DNA of 64,000 nt from Salpingoeca rosetta (GCA_033442325.1 JAWQFM010000014.1:238064-302063); one strand, 5' to 3'. Numbered from the stretch's first letter, positions 49,501 to 56,317 are shown. A program made the numbers and translations. Notes: generated by a model not told the origin, from the sequence alone.

Positions 49501-52500
49501 GTCAGCACAGCCTTGAGCAGGAAGTGAGCACACAGAGAGAGAGACAGAGAGAGAGAGAGAGAGACAGACAGACAGACAGACAGGCAGGCAGACAGACAGA
49601 CAGACAGACAGACAGGCAGACAGACAGACAGACAGACAGACAGACAGACAGAGAGAGAGAGAGAGAGAGAAGAGGGGGGTGTGGGGGGGTCAGGTCACGA
49701 TGAGATGAGGTGGGAGGCATGGTGCGAGGAGGAGGAAGTGCTTGCAGAGGCAGAACCTCCTGCACAAAGATTGATGTGACCGGCGGGCATTGGAGCGTAC
49801 AAACGCAGCCACGTTCGTGTAGAAATACTCACATAGACACACAAGCGGAGACACACACACACACACACACACTGACGCACGCACACACACACTCACGCAC
49901 ACTCACACACAACGAATATGCACCTGCTCGCCAGGGGCATCGCTCGTCGCAGTGAGGTTCGCAATGGCGGTTCCAGGTTCCACATTGATGGGAATGAGTG
50001 GAGATGGCTGATTGTTCGGGAACTCAGGCGACGATGTGATGCCTGGTGTCATGTGTCATGTGTGTGGGGGCGGCATACAATACGAGGACGTGTGAGAGCA
50101 ACAAGATTGCAAGGCACACACATGCACAAGCGCAAACATCTGCCTGTGCAGGCATCGCCACGTGCCAGCGTACAATGCACATAGGCACATGCACATGCAC
50201 CAGCGAGACAAGCAGACACAAACAAACACGCATAAACACACAGCCACAACAAGCATGCACAGAAACGGACAAGCATTGAGAACAGAGCGTTGCGTCATCT
50301 GAAAGACTTACGCGTGCACCCGAGGTTGTCGACAGCAAACCCTGGCTCGCAGGATTGGCATTGAGGCAGGGTGTAGAAGCGGGCAGTCGGGGCATCGGAA
50401 GGCACAGACCGATACGACGACACAAGGGTGCACGTGCGCGTGGTTGTGCTGGTCTGCACGTGCGTGAAACCAACGCAGCCCTGAGGGCGGTACTGGCGAC
50501 AATAGGTCGCACACGTGCTGACGGCGTCAACGCTCAAGTCAGTGATGGTCAGAGAGGTGATGGGAGTATAATCGACAGGCTGCGCGTACAGCATCAACAA
50601 CACGGCGTCGCTGCGCTGCTCCAGAGAATCGTGGCGGTTGCACACCGTGCACGCGTCACCAAACGCAGTGCAGTTGCACATGCTGTTTGCACCGACACTG
50701 CGCTGCCCATATGCGCACACGTACGACTCTAGAAAAGCAAGCAGGTGGAGGGGACAGGCAGATTGACTGCAACGTGAGAACTTGAATCGTCACACGCGTA
50801 TGCACGTCATGCATGTGTGCAATATGCACGTATGTGTGCGAATGGGTCAGTATCGTTCACATGAACACCACGTACAGAATAAAAAGCTTGTCTCACATGC
50901 ACGCACCTGTTTCGCAAATCACGTCGCTGGCGATGGTTGGTGGTGTGGCCACGTGCGCTCCAGCTGGGCAGGAAGACACGGGCTTGCAGACGCCCTATTG
51001 TGGGACACAGTGTGACGCAAAAGGCATCACATGTGAGCACTTCCAGTTGAGCAGAGACACGTTCATCCACACGTAGTGATCAACAGCGCAACGCACGGTA
51101 TACGCAAGATTGCAGAAGCAGACAGACAGACAGACAGACAGACAGACAAACAGAGACAGAGAGAGGACAACACATACACACAGAAACACACAGACGCATG
51201 TACACACAGCATGCACACACAGCACGCACACACACGCACTCATGCACGCGCACACACAGACACACACGCACACACGCACACACCGATGGTCGGTGATAGA
51301 AAGCAACGCCCAACTCGCAGTAGTCGCATTGGCGATCAGACGTGGGCGTTGGCGCTGTGTCGGTGACAAATCGCACATGAGTTGACATGCACAGCATTGA
51401 GGTGAGTACATGTGTGCATGCATGCATGCATGCATGCAAGTTCCTAGGCATCACGATGATGTGCACATGTAAACAGTACACTCCCAATGAGCATCTCGCA
51501 ATTCAAGAAGTACACGCTGAAGGAGACACGCGCGCGCGAGCACGCACCAAAGGTTTCCACTTTCGGAGGAACGCAGGCGCGTGGGCTTTGGCACAGCTGG
51601 GCGTTCTGCGCTGTGCTGAACGTGCCCGTTGGACAGGATGCACACACGCGATCCGTGCTTGGGCTTGGCTCACGCAGCACAAACTGCCCAGCAACGCAGT
51701 TCCGCGCAGACACACACTCGTTGCGGCCAGAGACCGTGTAGTGCCTGAAGCATAACAATAATGGCGCGAGTTGTGAATGTGACAGGTGGAGAGGGGACAA
51801 GTGTGAGGGAAAACAGTGGAAGCGGCAAGCACATGAAAACTGGAGGGCGTACGTGTGATTGGAGGCGTACACACACACACACACGCACACGCACACGCAC
51901 ACGCACACACACACACACACACGCACACACGCACACACGCACACATACACATACACACCAACACGCACACGCACACACACACACACACACACACACAGGA
52001 CACAGTAGCGTCTTACTCACCCAGGAGGACAAGCCTGGCACGTGCCTGGGGAGGACCTGCCACAGTCAACACGAATGCTGCCCGCAGGACAAGGTGCACA
52101 GTCTCTGCATTGGCCAGCGTGCGAATCATCGCAGCCGACGCGGAACTGGCCACTCGGGCATGCGCCGCAAAACTCGCACAAGCCACTGGAGCAAAACAGG
52201 GAAGCGCCACAGTCCGCCTGCGTTGTGCAACAGCCGTCATGCGCCACGATGGTGTACGCGCCAGTGGCCCCGTGACTGCCCTGCACGCGCGCATAGAACG
52301 GTAACGCCACCGGAGATCCTCGCGCGTACACCACTTCGCGGTTGAGCGCAGTCTCGCTGCTGTCAACCACGCTGCCTCGCGAGTCGAAGAGCCTCAGGTC
52401 GAGGTCGCCTTCAGCGTGCGAGAAGGAGATGGTGAAGGACAGCACGCCAGATGAGCACGCCGTCATAGAAAAGAAGTCCACGTCATCGGTGTCACTGATG

Positions 52501-55500: not shown

Positions 55501-56317
55501 CTGCCACAGACTCCCGGTTGCTGGTGGCGGAGTCGCTCACGCCCACCGTGGCGTTGTCGAGGTTGATGAGCTCGAGGTCCAGGTCGTACTCGTCGCCGTG
55601 GAAGTCGAGGGTGACGACGACGCTGCTGAAGGCGCACGCGCGCAGGAGGAAAAAGTCCTCATCGGTCTTGCTGGAGATGAACCCGGATGTGACCGAGTGG
55701 GGCTGGAGCAGGTGCGCGTTGCGGATGTCCTCGTTTGGCTCAAACCCGTCCCTGGGCAGGCCCGTGGCCGAGGTTCCAAAGGTCGTTGTTGCAGGTGAGG
55801 TGGTGTCCGGCTCGGTGGTGCTTGTGGTGGTGGGTGGCTCGGTCGAGCACTCCCCTTCCTCCTCGCACTCGCCGATGGTGGCGGTTGCCGTGTAGCCCAC
55901 GGGGCCACTGCCGCTGCTGAGGCGCAACCTCAAGTAGAGCATCTGGCCGTCGCCGCCCGTGTCGAGGGGCAGGCTGGCTTGGCCGTTGACGGCAAGCTTC
56001 TCCTTGAGGACTTTGTTTGAGGAGTCGAGCAGGCGTATGTCTGCCTTGCCGTTCCCGACCACCGCGAAGTCGACCTTGCCCACGCCGGCCTTGCACAGGC
56101 GCATGACGAAAAAGTCCACGTCCTCTTGCGAGTTGAGCTTGCCAGTCATCGTCAAGCCCAATGGCAGGTAGTCTGCGGAGTCCATTTGCTTGTTGGTGTT
56201 GGTGTCATCCGTGTCGCTCTCCATCAACGCCTCGCACACATGGCGATGGTTAGGGTGAAGAAGGCCACTGGTCAAAACCAGCACCACCACTGTCAGCACC
56301 AGCCGCGTGAGCCTCAT
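40584..56317 (-). CDS. Giant receptor tyrosine kinase: signal peptide, 7 PPC-like modules, EGF, Cys-rich repeats, PAN/apple, cadherin-like, HYR repeats, TM, tyrosine kinase, YDMG repeats, CAP-Gly
   Basis: Starts MRLTRLVLTVVVLVLTSGLL at 56317. Exons 56317-54697 and 54250-52021 splice in frame and continue into Cys-rich exons from ~51745. HYR motifs (DQSPPLFSFCPDDI...W..PTSTDN; DVTPPSVVCPSDI...ATDAAGLTATCTFTVTV). TM: IIAGAAAAGALLLILIIAVLIFV (~44425-44355). Kinase: LGKGAFGVV (43928-43850), VAVKSL (43688-43621), HRDVAARN, DFGLARE, LPVRWTAIE, TDVWSCGI. CAP-Gly: [23 protein letters not shown]. Some middle exon junctions were not individually verified. Confidence 0.85.
41505..42080 (-). repeat. Ten coding (L/V)YDMG tyrosine-motif repeats in the RTK cytoplasmic tail
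   Basis: Plus-strand CCCAT(G/A)TC(G/A)TA recurs ten times in one exon. Confidence 0.9.

Follow-up and report, generated by a model that had tools for sequence, protein, structure and literature searches.

The window analysed here, a stretch of 64,000 nucleotides from the choanoflagellate Salpingoeca rosetta (GCA_033442325.1, JAWQFM010000014.1:238064-302063), raises the question whether an array of bacterial-type PPC (pre-peptidase C-terminal) domains can form the outer end of a receptor tyrosine kinase (RTK), and from where such an array would have come. The array is encoded on the minus strand between positions 56212 and 52227. It is read here as the membrane-distal ectodomain of an S. rosetta RTK, made of PPC modules from a family that was probably gained from prokaryotes and then spread and shuffled within the genome; a probability of about 0.65 is given to this reading.

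The array consists of seven modules of about 115 amino acids (m1 to m7), six of them led by (E/D)PN, plus a divergent first copy. Their positions are listed below; bit scores were obtained with a hidden Markov model (HMM) made from 150 prokaryotic domains, called the prokaryote-only HMM, unless Pfam is named.

55865-56212, minus strand: m1, divergent, with TNTNK where EPND is expected; 31.4 bits, alignment
55400-55762, minus strand: m2; 89.3 bits, alignment
55229-55402, minus strand: pair of EGF-like Cys-rich repeats between m2 and m3; Cys pattern, sub-threshold Pfam matches to EGF_DL_JAG, hEGF and EGF_Teneurin
54697-55018, minus strand: first part of m3, to ...FGFRGAQ; Pfam PPC 19.7 bits, prokaryote-only HMM 90.3 bits
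54224-54250, minus strand: last strand of m3 (GPYRIQACC); splice reconstruction
53697-54056, minus strand: m4, the most consensus-like module, chosen for the structure model; 104.7 bits
53202-53543, minus strand: m5, 53% identical to m4; alignment and prokaryote-only HMM
52587-52937, minus strand: m6, divergent, GDLD motif lost; 35.6 bits
52227-52583, minus strand: m7; Pfam PPC 19.9 bits, prokaryote-only HMM 97 bits

All seven repeats are real and homologous, far beyond chance. With the prokaryote-only HMM, m2 to m5 and m7 scored 89-105 bits and the two divergent copies, m6 and m1, 35.6 and 31.4 bits (the latter with E 7e-6 at Z=1e6). In the alignment of the seven modules, which carries the read-through of intron 1 as the tail of m3, all seven share N10, D36, D38 and two Cys columns without exception. 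The modules are 23-53% identical to m4 and, leaving the m4/m5 pair aside, 23-40% identical to one another. Five of them (m2 to m5 and m7) keep a tight consensus past the residues of the putative Ca2+ site, with GDLD, T.NE and GY.GATG.Y, surface positions included. A sequence-only reading of the window had proposed seven PPC-type modules with a divergent first copy, and this count was borne out at 31-105 bits for each module, m6 being as divergent as m1. It had also described linkers rich in Ser and Thr (S/T-rich) and a pair of EGF-like repeats; both were found, the linkers between all neighbouring modules apart from m6 and m7, which adjoin directly.

By profile, fold and reciprocal matches, the modules belong to the superfamily of PPC domains and collagenase collagen-binding domains (CBD), the latter being a subclass of the PPC superfamily (PMC4356367). 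A search of PDB sequences with a profile of the seven modules detected ColG s3a-s3b (5iku) with E 3.4e-9, ColH s3 (3jqw) with 3.8e-5 and ColG s3b with about 5e-4. An alignment-based AlphaFold2 model of m4 was obtained with eight strands (pLDDT 88.7, pTM 0.84). Submitted to Foldseek, it gave clostridial or Bacillus collagenase CBD/PPC domains for all of the top 11 matches (TMq 0.66-0.80 and TMt 0.73-0.83 for single-domain entries), the best being ColG s3b, ColH s3 and the PPC domain of the Bacillus anthracis collagenase, with TM 0.69-0.83 and E down to 9e-8; the superposition on the CBDs of ColG and ColH gave TM 0.76-0.83. A word search with exon 2 returned 19 matches, all carrying PF04151; none is eukaryotic by name or source label, and two of the named ones are proteins of bacterial metagenome-assembled genomes. 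The nearest ESM Atlas clusters are likewise PPC-bearing, and the two with recorded taxa are 100% Bacteria. These searches were made with single exons or pieces of open reading frames (ORF) rather than with a joined protein model. Apart from noise-level matches to DUF7524, DUF3244 and Curlin_rpt, PPC was the only Pfam family matched on the modules, and an NCBIfam scan of both exons gave noise only (Stx B-subunit models with 14-16 bits, cut-offs being 165-201). The bacterial-type assignment is supported, with relatives that are overwhelmingly prokaryotic.

The way in which the modules are joined to each other follows from the exon structure of the 5' part of the gene.

56252-56317, minus strand: predicted signal peptide (MRLTRLVLTVVVLVLTSGLL...) with its Met start codon (56315-56317); ORF translation, read by eye
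54697-56317, minus strand: exon 1, 1621 nt, with signal peptide, m1, m2, EGF-like pair and most of m3; open frame, donor GTGCGG at 54696
54251-54696, minus strand: intron 1, 446 nt, GT..AG, rich in CA repeats, within m3; splice pairing
52021-54250, minus strand: exon 2, 2230 nt, with the end of m3, m4 to m7 and the first Cys-rich repeats; open frame, donor GTGAGT at 52020
52021-52226, minus strand: Cys-rich C..CP.G.F/Y repeats (TNFR/ephrin-receptor-like) after m7; translation, no match in Pfam
51570-51744, minus strand: exon 3, 3' end approximate, Cys-rich repeats continued; CPPG|HY unit completed over intron 2

Two long open frames are present on the minus strand (54593-56458 and 52017-54200). 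When all GT/AG pairs between them were enumerated, the donor at 54696 and the acceptor at 54250 formed the only pair giving ...FGFRGAQ|GPYRIQACCASNITGIC..., and the end of m3 restored in this way (...GAQ|GPYRIQACCAS...) matches the ends of m4 and m5. Since m3 is completed only through this splice, exons 1 and 2 must be joined. The read-through of intron 1 stays open for 34 codons (54593-54696, minus strand) and mimics a module end (GAVLQVLAQLC), so that a stop-to-stop reading of the ORF gives a wrong C-terminus of m3. The stop closing the second open frame (52017-52019) falls within the consensus GTGAGT donor at 52020, and splicing onward to 51744 makes one unit (C..CPPG|HY...) of the Cys-rich repeats whole; paralogs of these repeats occur at 11 other sites of the genome. 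Exon 2 does not terminate the protein, and the PPC exons are joined both to each other and onward. The lengths of exons 1 and 2 fit the 1.6 and 2.2 kb given earlier for two unusually long exons; the exon encoding the downstream HYR (hyalin repeat) domains is, however, also long (about 1.3 kb). With this exon and an intron lying within m3, the idea that long, intron-poor exons mark foreign DNA did not hold.

Most of the inspected introns of the gene are packed with CA/TG microsatellites (window positions 40000-57000), and these give rise, on either strand, to long but spurious open frames reading C-V-C-V or H-T-H-T. Contamination by bacterial DNA was considered and rejected, as the modules alternate with segments of EGF-like and mucin-like type and are interrupted by a spliceosomal intron, in a eukaryotic gene rich in CA repeats.

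Further along the same strand, the following elements were identified.

50312-50697, minus strand: Cys-containing exon, PAN/apple-like by eye; no match in Pfam, 41%-identical paralog on contig C13
49290-49511, minus strand: weak cadherin-like exon; Pfam Cadherin E 0.0011, below cut-off
44428-45549, minus strand: three HYR domains; Pfam HYR E 7.9e-34, in three stretches
44356-44427, minus strand: single predicted transmembrane helix (GIIAGAAAAGALLLILIIAVLIFV), followed by the basic residues NRMRAKSR; read by eye
42485-43969, minus strand: tyrosine-kinase domain in at least four exons (GKGAFGVV, AVKSL, HRDVAARN, PVRWTAIE); PF07714 PK_Tyr_Ser-Thr E 1.3e-33 and 1.7e-30
41524-42072, minus strand: C-terminal tail with ten (N/D/S)(L/V)YDMG repeats; translation

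Elements expected of an RTK were found: a tyrosine-kinase catalytic domain, with HRDVAARN and PVRWTAIE as motifs specific for tyrosine kinases, and ahead of it, as judged by eye, a signal peptide, an ectodomain and one transmembrane helix. The ten YDMG repeats of the tail are near-identical, are spaced by 9-30 residues and would offer a dense array of candidate phosphotyrosine docking sites. No peptidase domain was detected by Pfam in the scanned exons and ORF pieces of the gene. In the supplementary data of Fairclough et al. 2013, look-ups by peptide and by InterPro pair gave no match to the RTK protein or to the class of its kinase.

Taken together, the PPC modules and the kinase most likely belong to one gene. 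A dynamic program based on codon usage and splice sites found an open path of 19 exons and about 2950 codons from Met 56317 to beyond the kinase; the path is rough, as it was forced to begin at this Met, omits exon 3 and the exons of the kinase N-lobe, and would also bridge two adjacent genes. A single signal-peptide-like start and a single transmembrane segment were seen along the gene, and inspection of the translation between 51.5 and 50.8 kb showed no Met followed by a hydrophobic, signal-peptide-like stretch in a coding-looking frame. The closest paralog is an RTK on contig C13 (G000:C13:408583-416206, plus strand), whose kinase exon (C13:415198-415677) is 70% identical. The PAN-like exon has its sole paralog (408583-409026, 41% identical) 6.6 kb upstream of this kinase. 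The two C13 exons share one strand and are spaced as they are here, so that the RTK unit reaches upstream at least as far as the PAN-like exon. The stretch left between exon 3 and the PAN-like exon measures about 0.9 kb (51.6-50.7 kb). The placement of the modules at the N-terminal end of what is most likely a single RTK gene agrees with the splice between exons 1 and 2, the donor of exon 2, the exon path and the C13 paralog. At the other end, the RTK tail is immediately followed by a CAP-Gly domain (40587-40892, minus strand, Pfam E 2.4e-22), which the rough exon path appends to the RTK as its final exon. Either the receptor kinase ends, very unusually, in a microtubule-binding domain, or the CAP-Gly domain belongs to a small gene of its own.

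The origin of the modules was addressed by a profile search of 1.84 billion representatives, which gave 19,026 matches with E <= 1e-3, 882 of them with E <= 1e-30; the best profile matches are giant arrays of up to 55 copies per protein. Relatives were judged from the best 150 of the 19,026 matches. By best single domain, the top match among these is PTSG_08873 of S. rosetta itself (P0010, XP_004990259.1), the only identified eukaryote. Nine of the other matches were judged by their cluster records, one being a named haloarchaeal surface protein and eight unnamed metagenome proteins, and the rest look prokaryotic by their N-termini only (lipoprotein or planctomycete-type leaders). The two sequences nearest to S. 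rosetta modules in the tree described below, P0052 and P0147, lie on bacterial contigs together with GGDEF, ECF-sigma and ThiS/ThiF/JAB genes. A word search with m4 alone gave no matches. Those with exon 2 and with PTSG_08873 gave, within the length band, prokaryotic PPC proteins only; S/T-rich words probably crowd the list, so that the absence of eukaryotes from it says little. From these data the module family would be prokaryotic in essence, and choanoflagellates most likely acquired it through horizontal transfer into their lineage. One relative, P0046 (the 'Hvo_1808 family surface protein' of Haloarcula marina), has modules about 42% identical to m4 and m5, with GFSHAQGDLD and GY.GATGPY in common; they are as close to m4 and m5 as any S. 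rosetta paralog outside the clade of the RTK modules.

Within S. rosetta, a profile search of the contigs revealed at least 57 modules, seven of them in this gene and the other 50 spread over 19 contigs at about 22 further sites. PTSG_08873 is encoded on contig C28 of the same assembly (about 248800-253400, minus strand, 99.4-100% identity) by a single exon and consists of about 11 PPC repeats without a kinase (Pfam PPC 103 bits). Its residues 1162-1216 match Pfam Por_Secre_tail, a bacterial type IX secretion sorting domain, with 56 bits, above the cut-off; this may be a relic of the bacterial donor or a cross-match between beta-sandwiches. Three PF04151 genes, PTSG_08873, PTSG_07683 and PTSG_10562, have been published as candidates for horizontal gene transfer from bacteria in an alien-index study (Matriano et al., bioRxiv 10.1101/2020.06.28.176636). 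According to that study, PTSG_08873 (single exon, best match in Oscillatoria) and PTSG_10562 (best match in Crenothrix) have no holozoan match, and PTSG_07683 (best match in Oleiphilus) has a counterpart in Monosiga.

A tree was computed with IQ-TREE (121 columns, unrooted, support given as UFBoot/SH-aLRT) from the seven modules of the RTK, a further 30 from S. rosetta and 45 domains of prokaryotes; about 19 of the 57 S. rosetta modules lie outside it. The seven RTK modules and two from a leucine-rich repeat (LRR) gene on contig C6 together make up one clade (98/93). Inside it, m3, m4 and m5 group together (98/86), m6 groups with m1 and the C6 module C6_747903 (supports of 98/85 and 92/91, the latter for the group m1-m6-C6_747903), and m7 pairs with C6_747168 with weak support (51/84). 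The 28 other S. rosetta modules form a second clade, called group B (97/95), in which the bacterial P0052 is nested with weak support. Prokaryotic sequences stand between the two S. rosetta clades, on poorly supported branches. In approximately unbiased (AU) tests, neither a single clade of all S. rosetta modules (p 0.81) nor one of the RTK modules (p 0.88) was rejected. As the constrained trees had a better likelihood than the quick free trees, no conclusion was drawn on one versus two acquisitions, and statements on clades rest on the careful tree and on these non-rejected outcomes.

The C6 gene (G000:C6:745668-749018, minus strand) encodes a signal peptide, a divergent module, a poly-Thr linker of about 60 Thr and a canonical module ending in CC. 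It continues with a CC...CGAC junction resembling that behind m7, and a long array of LRRs follows (Pfam LRR_8 E 3e-38); its open frame reaches 1845 amino acids, and its 3' end is outside of the sequence seen. Its two modules are sisters to m6/m1 and to m7. No PPC-like module was detected on contig C13 in the profile search of the genome. The same module lineage occurs on the RTK and on the C6 LRR scaffold, and the sister RTK of C13 has no modules; duplication and exon shuffling inside the genome are therefore proposed. One sub-lineage would have been duplicated, giving rise to the seven RTK modules and to the two modules of the LRR receptor-like gene, and would have been joined to a pre-existing RTK of the HYR type. 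The domain phylogeny suggested as a check thus showed the RTK modules grouping together, in a clade that also includes the two C6 modules and points to amplification within the genome. Likewise, of the proposed horizontal acquisition with tandem amplification, a prokaryotic origin remains probable, but the array was not imported as such into the kinase gene, given at least 57 modules in the genome and the RTK plus C6 clade.

The Cys residues had been described as added, which was not confirmed. Cys43 and a C-terminal Cys form a pair in all seven RTK modules, in 28 of the 30 other S. rosetta modules and in 22 of the 150 nearest prokaryotic domains, including those of the bacterial P0052 and P0042. 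Conserved cysteines are also found in Vibrio-type PPC domains (PMC6168687). It is only the doubled CC, as in m3, m4, m5, m7 and C6_747168, that looks specific to the RTK plus C6 clade.

As to how the modules may work, two sites known from collagenase CBDs could be compared. In the profile-PDB alignment, EKEPNN and DQDYFYF of ColH, as well as EKENND and DDSRDYY of ColG, align with EPND and DxDFF of the modules. In the crystal structures these segments reportedly bind two Ca2+ ions and stiffen the N-terminal linker (Wilson et al. 2003). The residue numbering derived from that work agrees with Tyr970, Tyr994 and Tyr996 as named in PMC4356367. Among the seven modules, E8 is conserved in six, N10, D36 and D38 in all, and D, E or N occupies position 11 in five. 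The full acidic motif (E-P-N-D/E/N near the N-terminus and D-x-D followed by two aromatic residues) is kept in five modules; m6 keeps it except for the fourth position, and m1 lacks E-P. A Ca2+ site in the modules is therefore rated as probable from conservation. In the collagenase, Ca2+ converts the N-terminal linker of the CBD from helix to strand and raises the affinity for collagen, for which Tyr970, Tyr994 and Tyr996 are the binding hot spot of ColG (PMC4356367). This aromatic hot spot was not found in the modules: the Tyr970 column contains T, I, A or G and is aromatic in none, the Tyr994 column is Y or F in m2 to m4 only and the Tyr996 column in m2 to m5, so that both are aromatic together only in m2 to m4. 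With Tyr970 replaced and the two others partly kept, collagen is not supported as the ligand.

The protein is envisaged in the order of signal peptide, seven PPC/CBD beta-sandwich modules, Cys-rich repeats, PAN-like, cadherin-like and three HYR domains, transmembrane helix, kinase and YDMG tail, the S/T-rich spacers being presumably O-glycosylated. At the far end of this large ectodomain, the modules might act as a multivalent binding rod, rigidified by Ca2+ and presenting several similar faces, for an extended ligand outside the cell, be it a polymer of the matrix, a secreted protein with PPC repeats or the surface of bacteria. Engagement at several sites could then cluster the receptors and activate the kinase, with trans-phosphorylation leading to a phosphorylated YDMG tail. 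The supplement of Fairclough et al. 2013 has PTSG_08873 and PTSG_10562 among the genes up-regulated in colonial cells; PPC-repeat proteins may thus be components of the colony matrix. The specific proposal that the PPC cap is a Ca2+-dependent, multivalent sensor of an extracellular polymer, either of a colony matrix containing PPC-repeat proteins or of the surface of prey or cue bacteria, acting through phosphotyrosine signalling, is a long shot. If true, the ligand-binding end of a pre-animal RTK controlling feeding, settlement or colony formation would go back to a bacterial domain.

A number of points weigh against the reading preferred here. Pfam's own PPC model (PF04151/IPR007280, gathering score 25.9 bits) stays below threshold on both exons (24.8 bits for exon 1 and 14.6 bits for exon 2) and on every module, with at most 19.9 bits for single modules and 9.6 bits or nothing for four of the seven; the model spans just 70 positions of a domain of about 115 amino acids. 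In the database check recommended with the sequence-only reading, prokaryotic relatives do dominate, but the Pfam match is thus sub-threshold and the best non-self match is PTSG_08873. By the residue comparison, binding of collagen in the manner of collagenases is not supported for the modules. As to the proposed horizontal origin, the tree is unrooted and has about 120 columns, and the view of eukaryotes is limited to the best 150 matches. The Monosiga counterpart of one S. rosetta PPC gene implies that at least part of the family was inherited vertically in choanoflagellates. Finally, the step by which exon 3 (about 51.6 kb) is linked with the PAN-like exon (50.7 kb) is drawn from the heuristic path and from the fact that no alternative start was seen. 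This step is where an explanation by two genes would apply: the PPC, EGF-like and Cys-rich exons would encode a secreted protein of their own, the part with HYR domains, transmembrane helix and kinase would be a separate gene downstream on the same strand, and the modules would not be wired to phosphotyrosine signalling. The heuristic path would indeed join neighbouring genes as easily as one gene and skipped known coding pieces (exon 3 and the kinase N-lobe), and PTSG_08873 is an example of an S. rosetta gene made of PPC repeats only. Two genes are nevertheless quite unlikely, as exon 2 closes in a consensus donor and not at a free stop, the Cys-repeat unit runs on in exon 3, no new start was seen between 51.5 and 50.8 kb, and the PAN-like exon, which lacks a start, accompanies the kinase in the C13 paralog as well. 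The word search with exon 2 also returned no protein of 400-1272 amino acids encoded in the window.

Concerning the origin, the modules could represent an old eukaryotic domain that was inherited vertically, kept in choanoflagellates and lost elsewhere, its likeness to prokaryotic domains reflecting common ancestry. Such a history would suit the tolerated single clade of all S. rosetta modules (AU p 0.81, without loss of likelihood), an identity to prokaryotic domains (35-44%) that is no higher than among paralogs, the introns of module genes (one within m3), the Monosiga counterpart of PTSG_07683 and the fact that the eukaryotic range is seen only through the best 150 matches. It is considered unlikely, since S. 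rosetta is the sole identified eukaryote among these 150 of 19,026 matches, PTSG_08873 and PTSG_10562 lack holozoan matches, the best tree places prokaryotic sequences between the two S. rosetta groups and P0052 inside one of them (weak support), and the Cys pattern of group B is common to a bacterial subgroup. The opposite extreme, a bacterial PPC array transferred straight into the RTK gene and amplified there, with cysteines gained in the eukaryote, is very improbable: two C6 modules fall within the RTK clade, at least 48 further modules exist elsewhere in the genome, the Cys pair is common to bacterial homologs and, with most modules 23-40% identical to one another, most duplications are old. 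The tolerated clade of the seven RTK modules (AU p 0.88) and the fairly recent tandem pair m4/m5 (53% identity) are what it has in its favour. For the function, a binding role was preferred over a pure spacer because five modules conserve more than a scaffold needs (GDLD, T.NE, GY.GATG.Y). If the modules had no specific ligand, they and the mucin-like linkers could serve as a stiff stalk resistant to proteases, or as a spacer in the glycocalyx, by which the HYR and cadherin-like domains are kept at a distance from the membrane or shielded. The long S/T-rich spacers, the far drift of m1 and m6 in prokaryote-only HMM scores, the partial loss of the collagen-binding tyrosines and the role of Ca2+ in collagenases, which is mainly to stabilise and orient the CBD (PMC4356367), are in line with a stalk. 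Yet the tight consensus of the five modules beyond the Ca2+ site, surface positions included, suggests selection past stability, and known PPC/CBD domains bind insoluble substrates, CBDs binding to collagen (PMC6168687), which makes a mere stalk rather doubtful.

Choanoflagellate RTKs are the nearest outgroup for the rise of animal receptor signalling, and almost none has a known ligand. An RTK tipped with a prokaryote-type, substrate-binding, Ca2+-dependent module, as proposed here, would provide a concrete and testable handle, the modules being expressible and S. rosetta editable. It would also illustrate a route to new receptors, in which a family probably gained from bacteria was expanded and shuffled onto two scaffolds, an HYR-type RTK and an LRR protein. 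The value of these data is tempered by what is already published, namely the PPC family in S. rosetta, its InterPro label, its likely bacterial origin and the extensive shuffling of RTK ectodomains, and by a function that is deduced throughout. The literature search yielded no paper linking choanoflagellate, RTK and PPC, and the overviews of RTK ectodomains name HYR and other domains, not PPC.

The closest structural counterparts are the CBDs of ColG and ColH (s3, s3a, s3b) from Hathewaya (Clostridium) histolytica (PDB 1nqd, 4hpk, 3jqw, 5iku), which have the same beta-sandwich fold and a significant profile match. Their N-terminal E-x-E/P-N-N/D and D-x-D-Y/F-Y/F segments align with those of the modules, and ColG s3a-s3b is also arranged in tandem. 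They differ in being bacterial and C-terminal to an M9 collagenase, whereas the modules are N-terminal in a eukaryotic receptor; identity is only about 18-20%, the Tyr970 position is non-aromatic and Tyr994/Tyr996 are partly matched. The RTK modules additionally show GDLD(L/M) and T.NE motifs that are absent in ColG, and they come in seven copies with mucin-like spacers. The best relatives by sequence are the prokaryotic PPC-array proteins, with 35-44% identity per domain and long tandem arrays of up to 55 domains per protein. EPND, DxD(W/F/Y)(F/Y), GDLDL and GYxGATGPY are common to both, and a subgroup has the same Cys pair. In contrast to the RTK, these proteins are without kinase, HYR or EGF domains, and the RTK modules fall just below the Pfam cut-off. 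PTSG_08873, PTSG_07683 and PTSG_10562 share genome and domain superfamily with the RTK modules but belong to the separate clade of group B (97/95). On the receptor side, the hyalin-repeat RTKs of choanoflagellates (Manning et al. 2008; Suga et al. 2012, cited in PMC4342544) also possess, as far as they are described there, HYR domains, a single transmembrane helix and a tyrosine kinase with HRDVAARN. Orthology between S. rosetta and Monosiga extends to only 21% of RTKs (PMC4054682). The ectodomains of hyalin-repeat RTKs also arose by lineage-specific domain shuffling; PPC modules are not mentioned for any RTK in the literature searched, and the closest paralog in the genome, on C13, lacks them.

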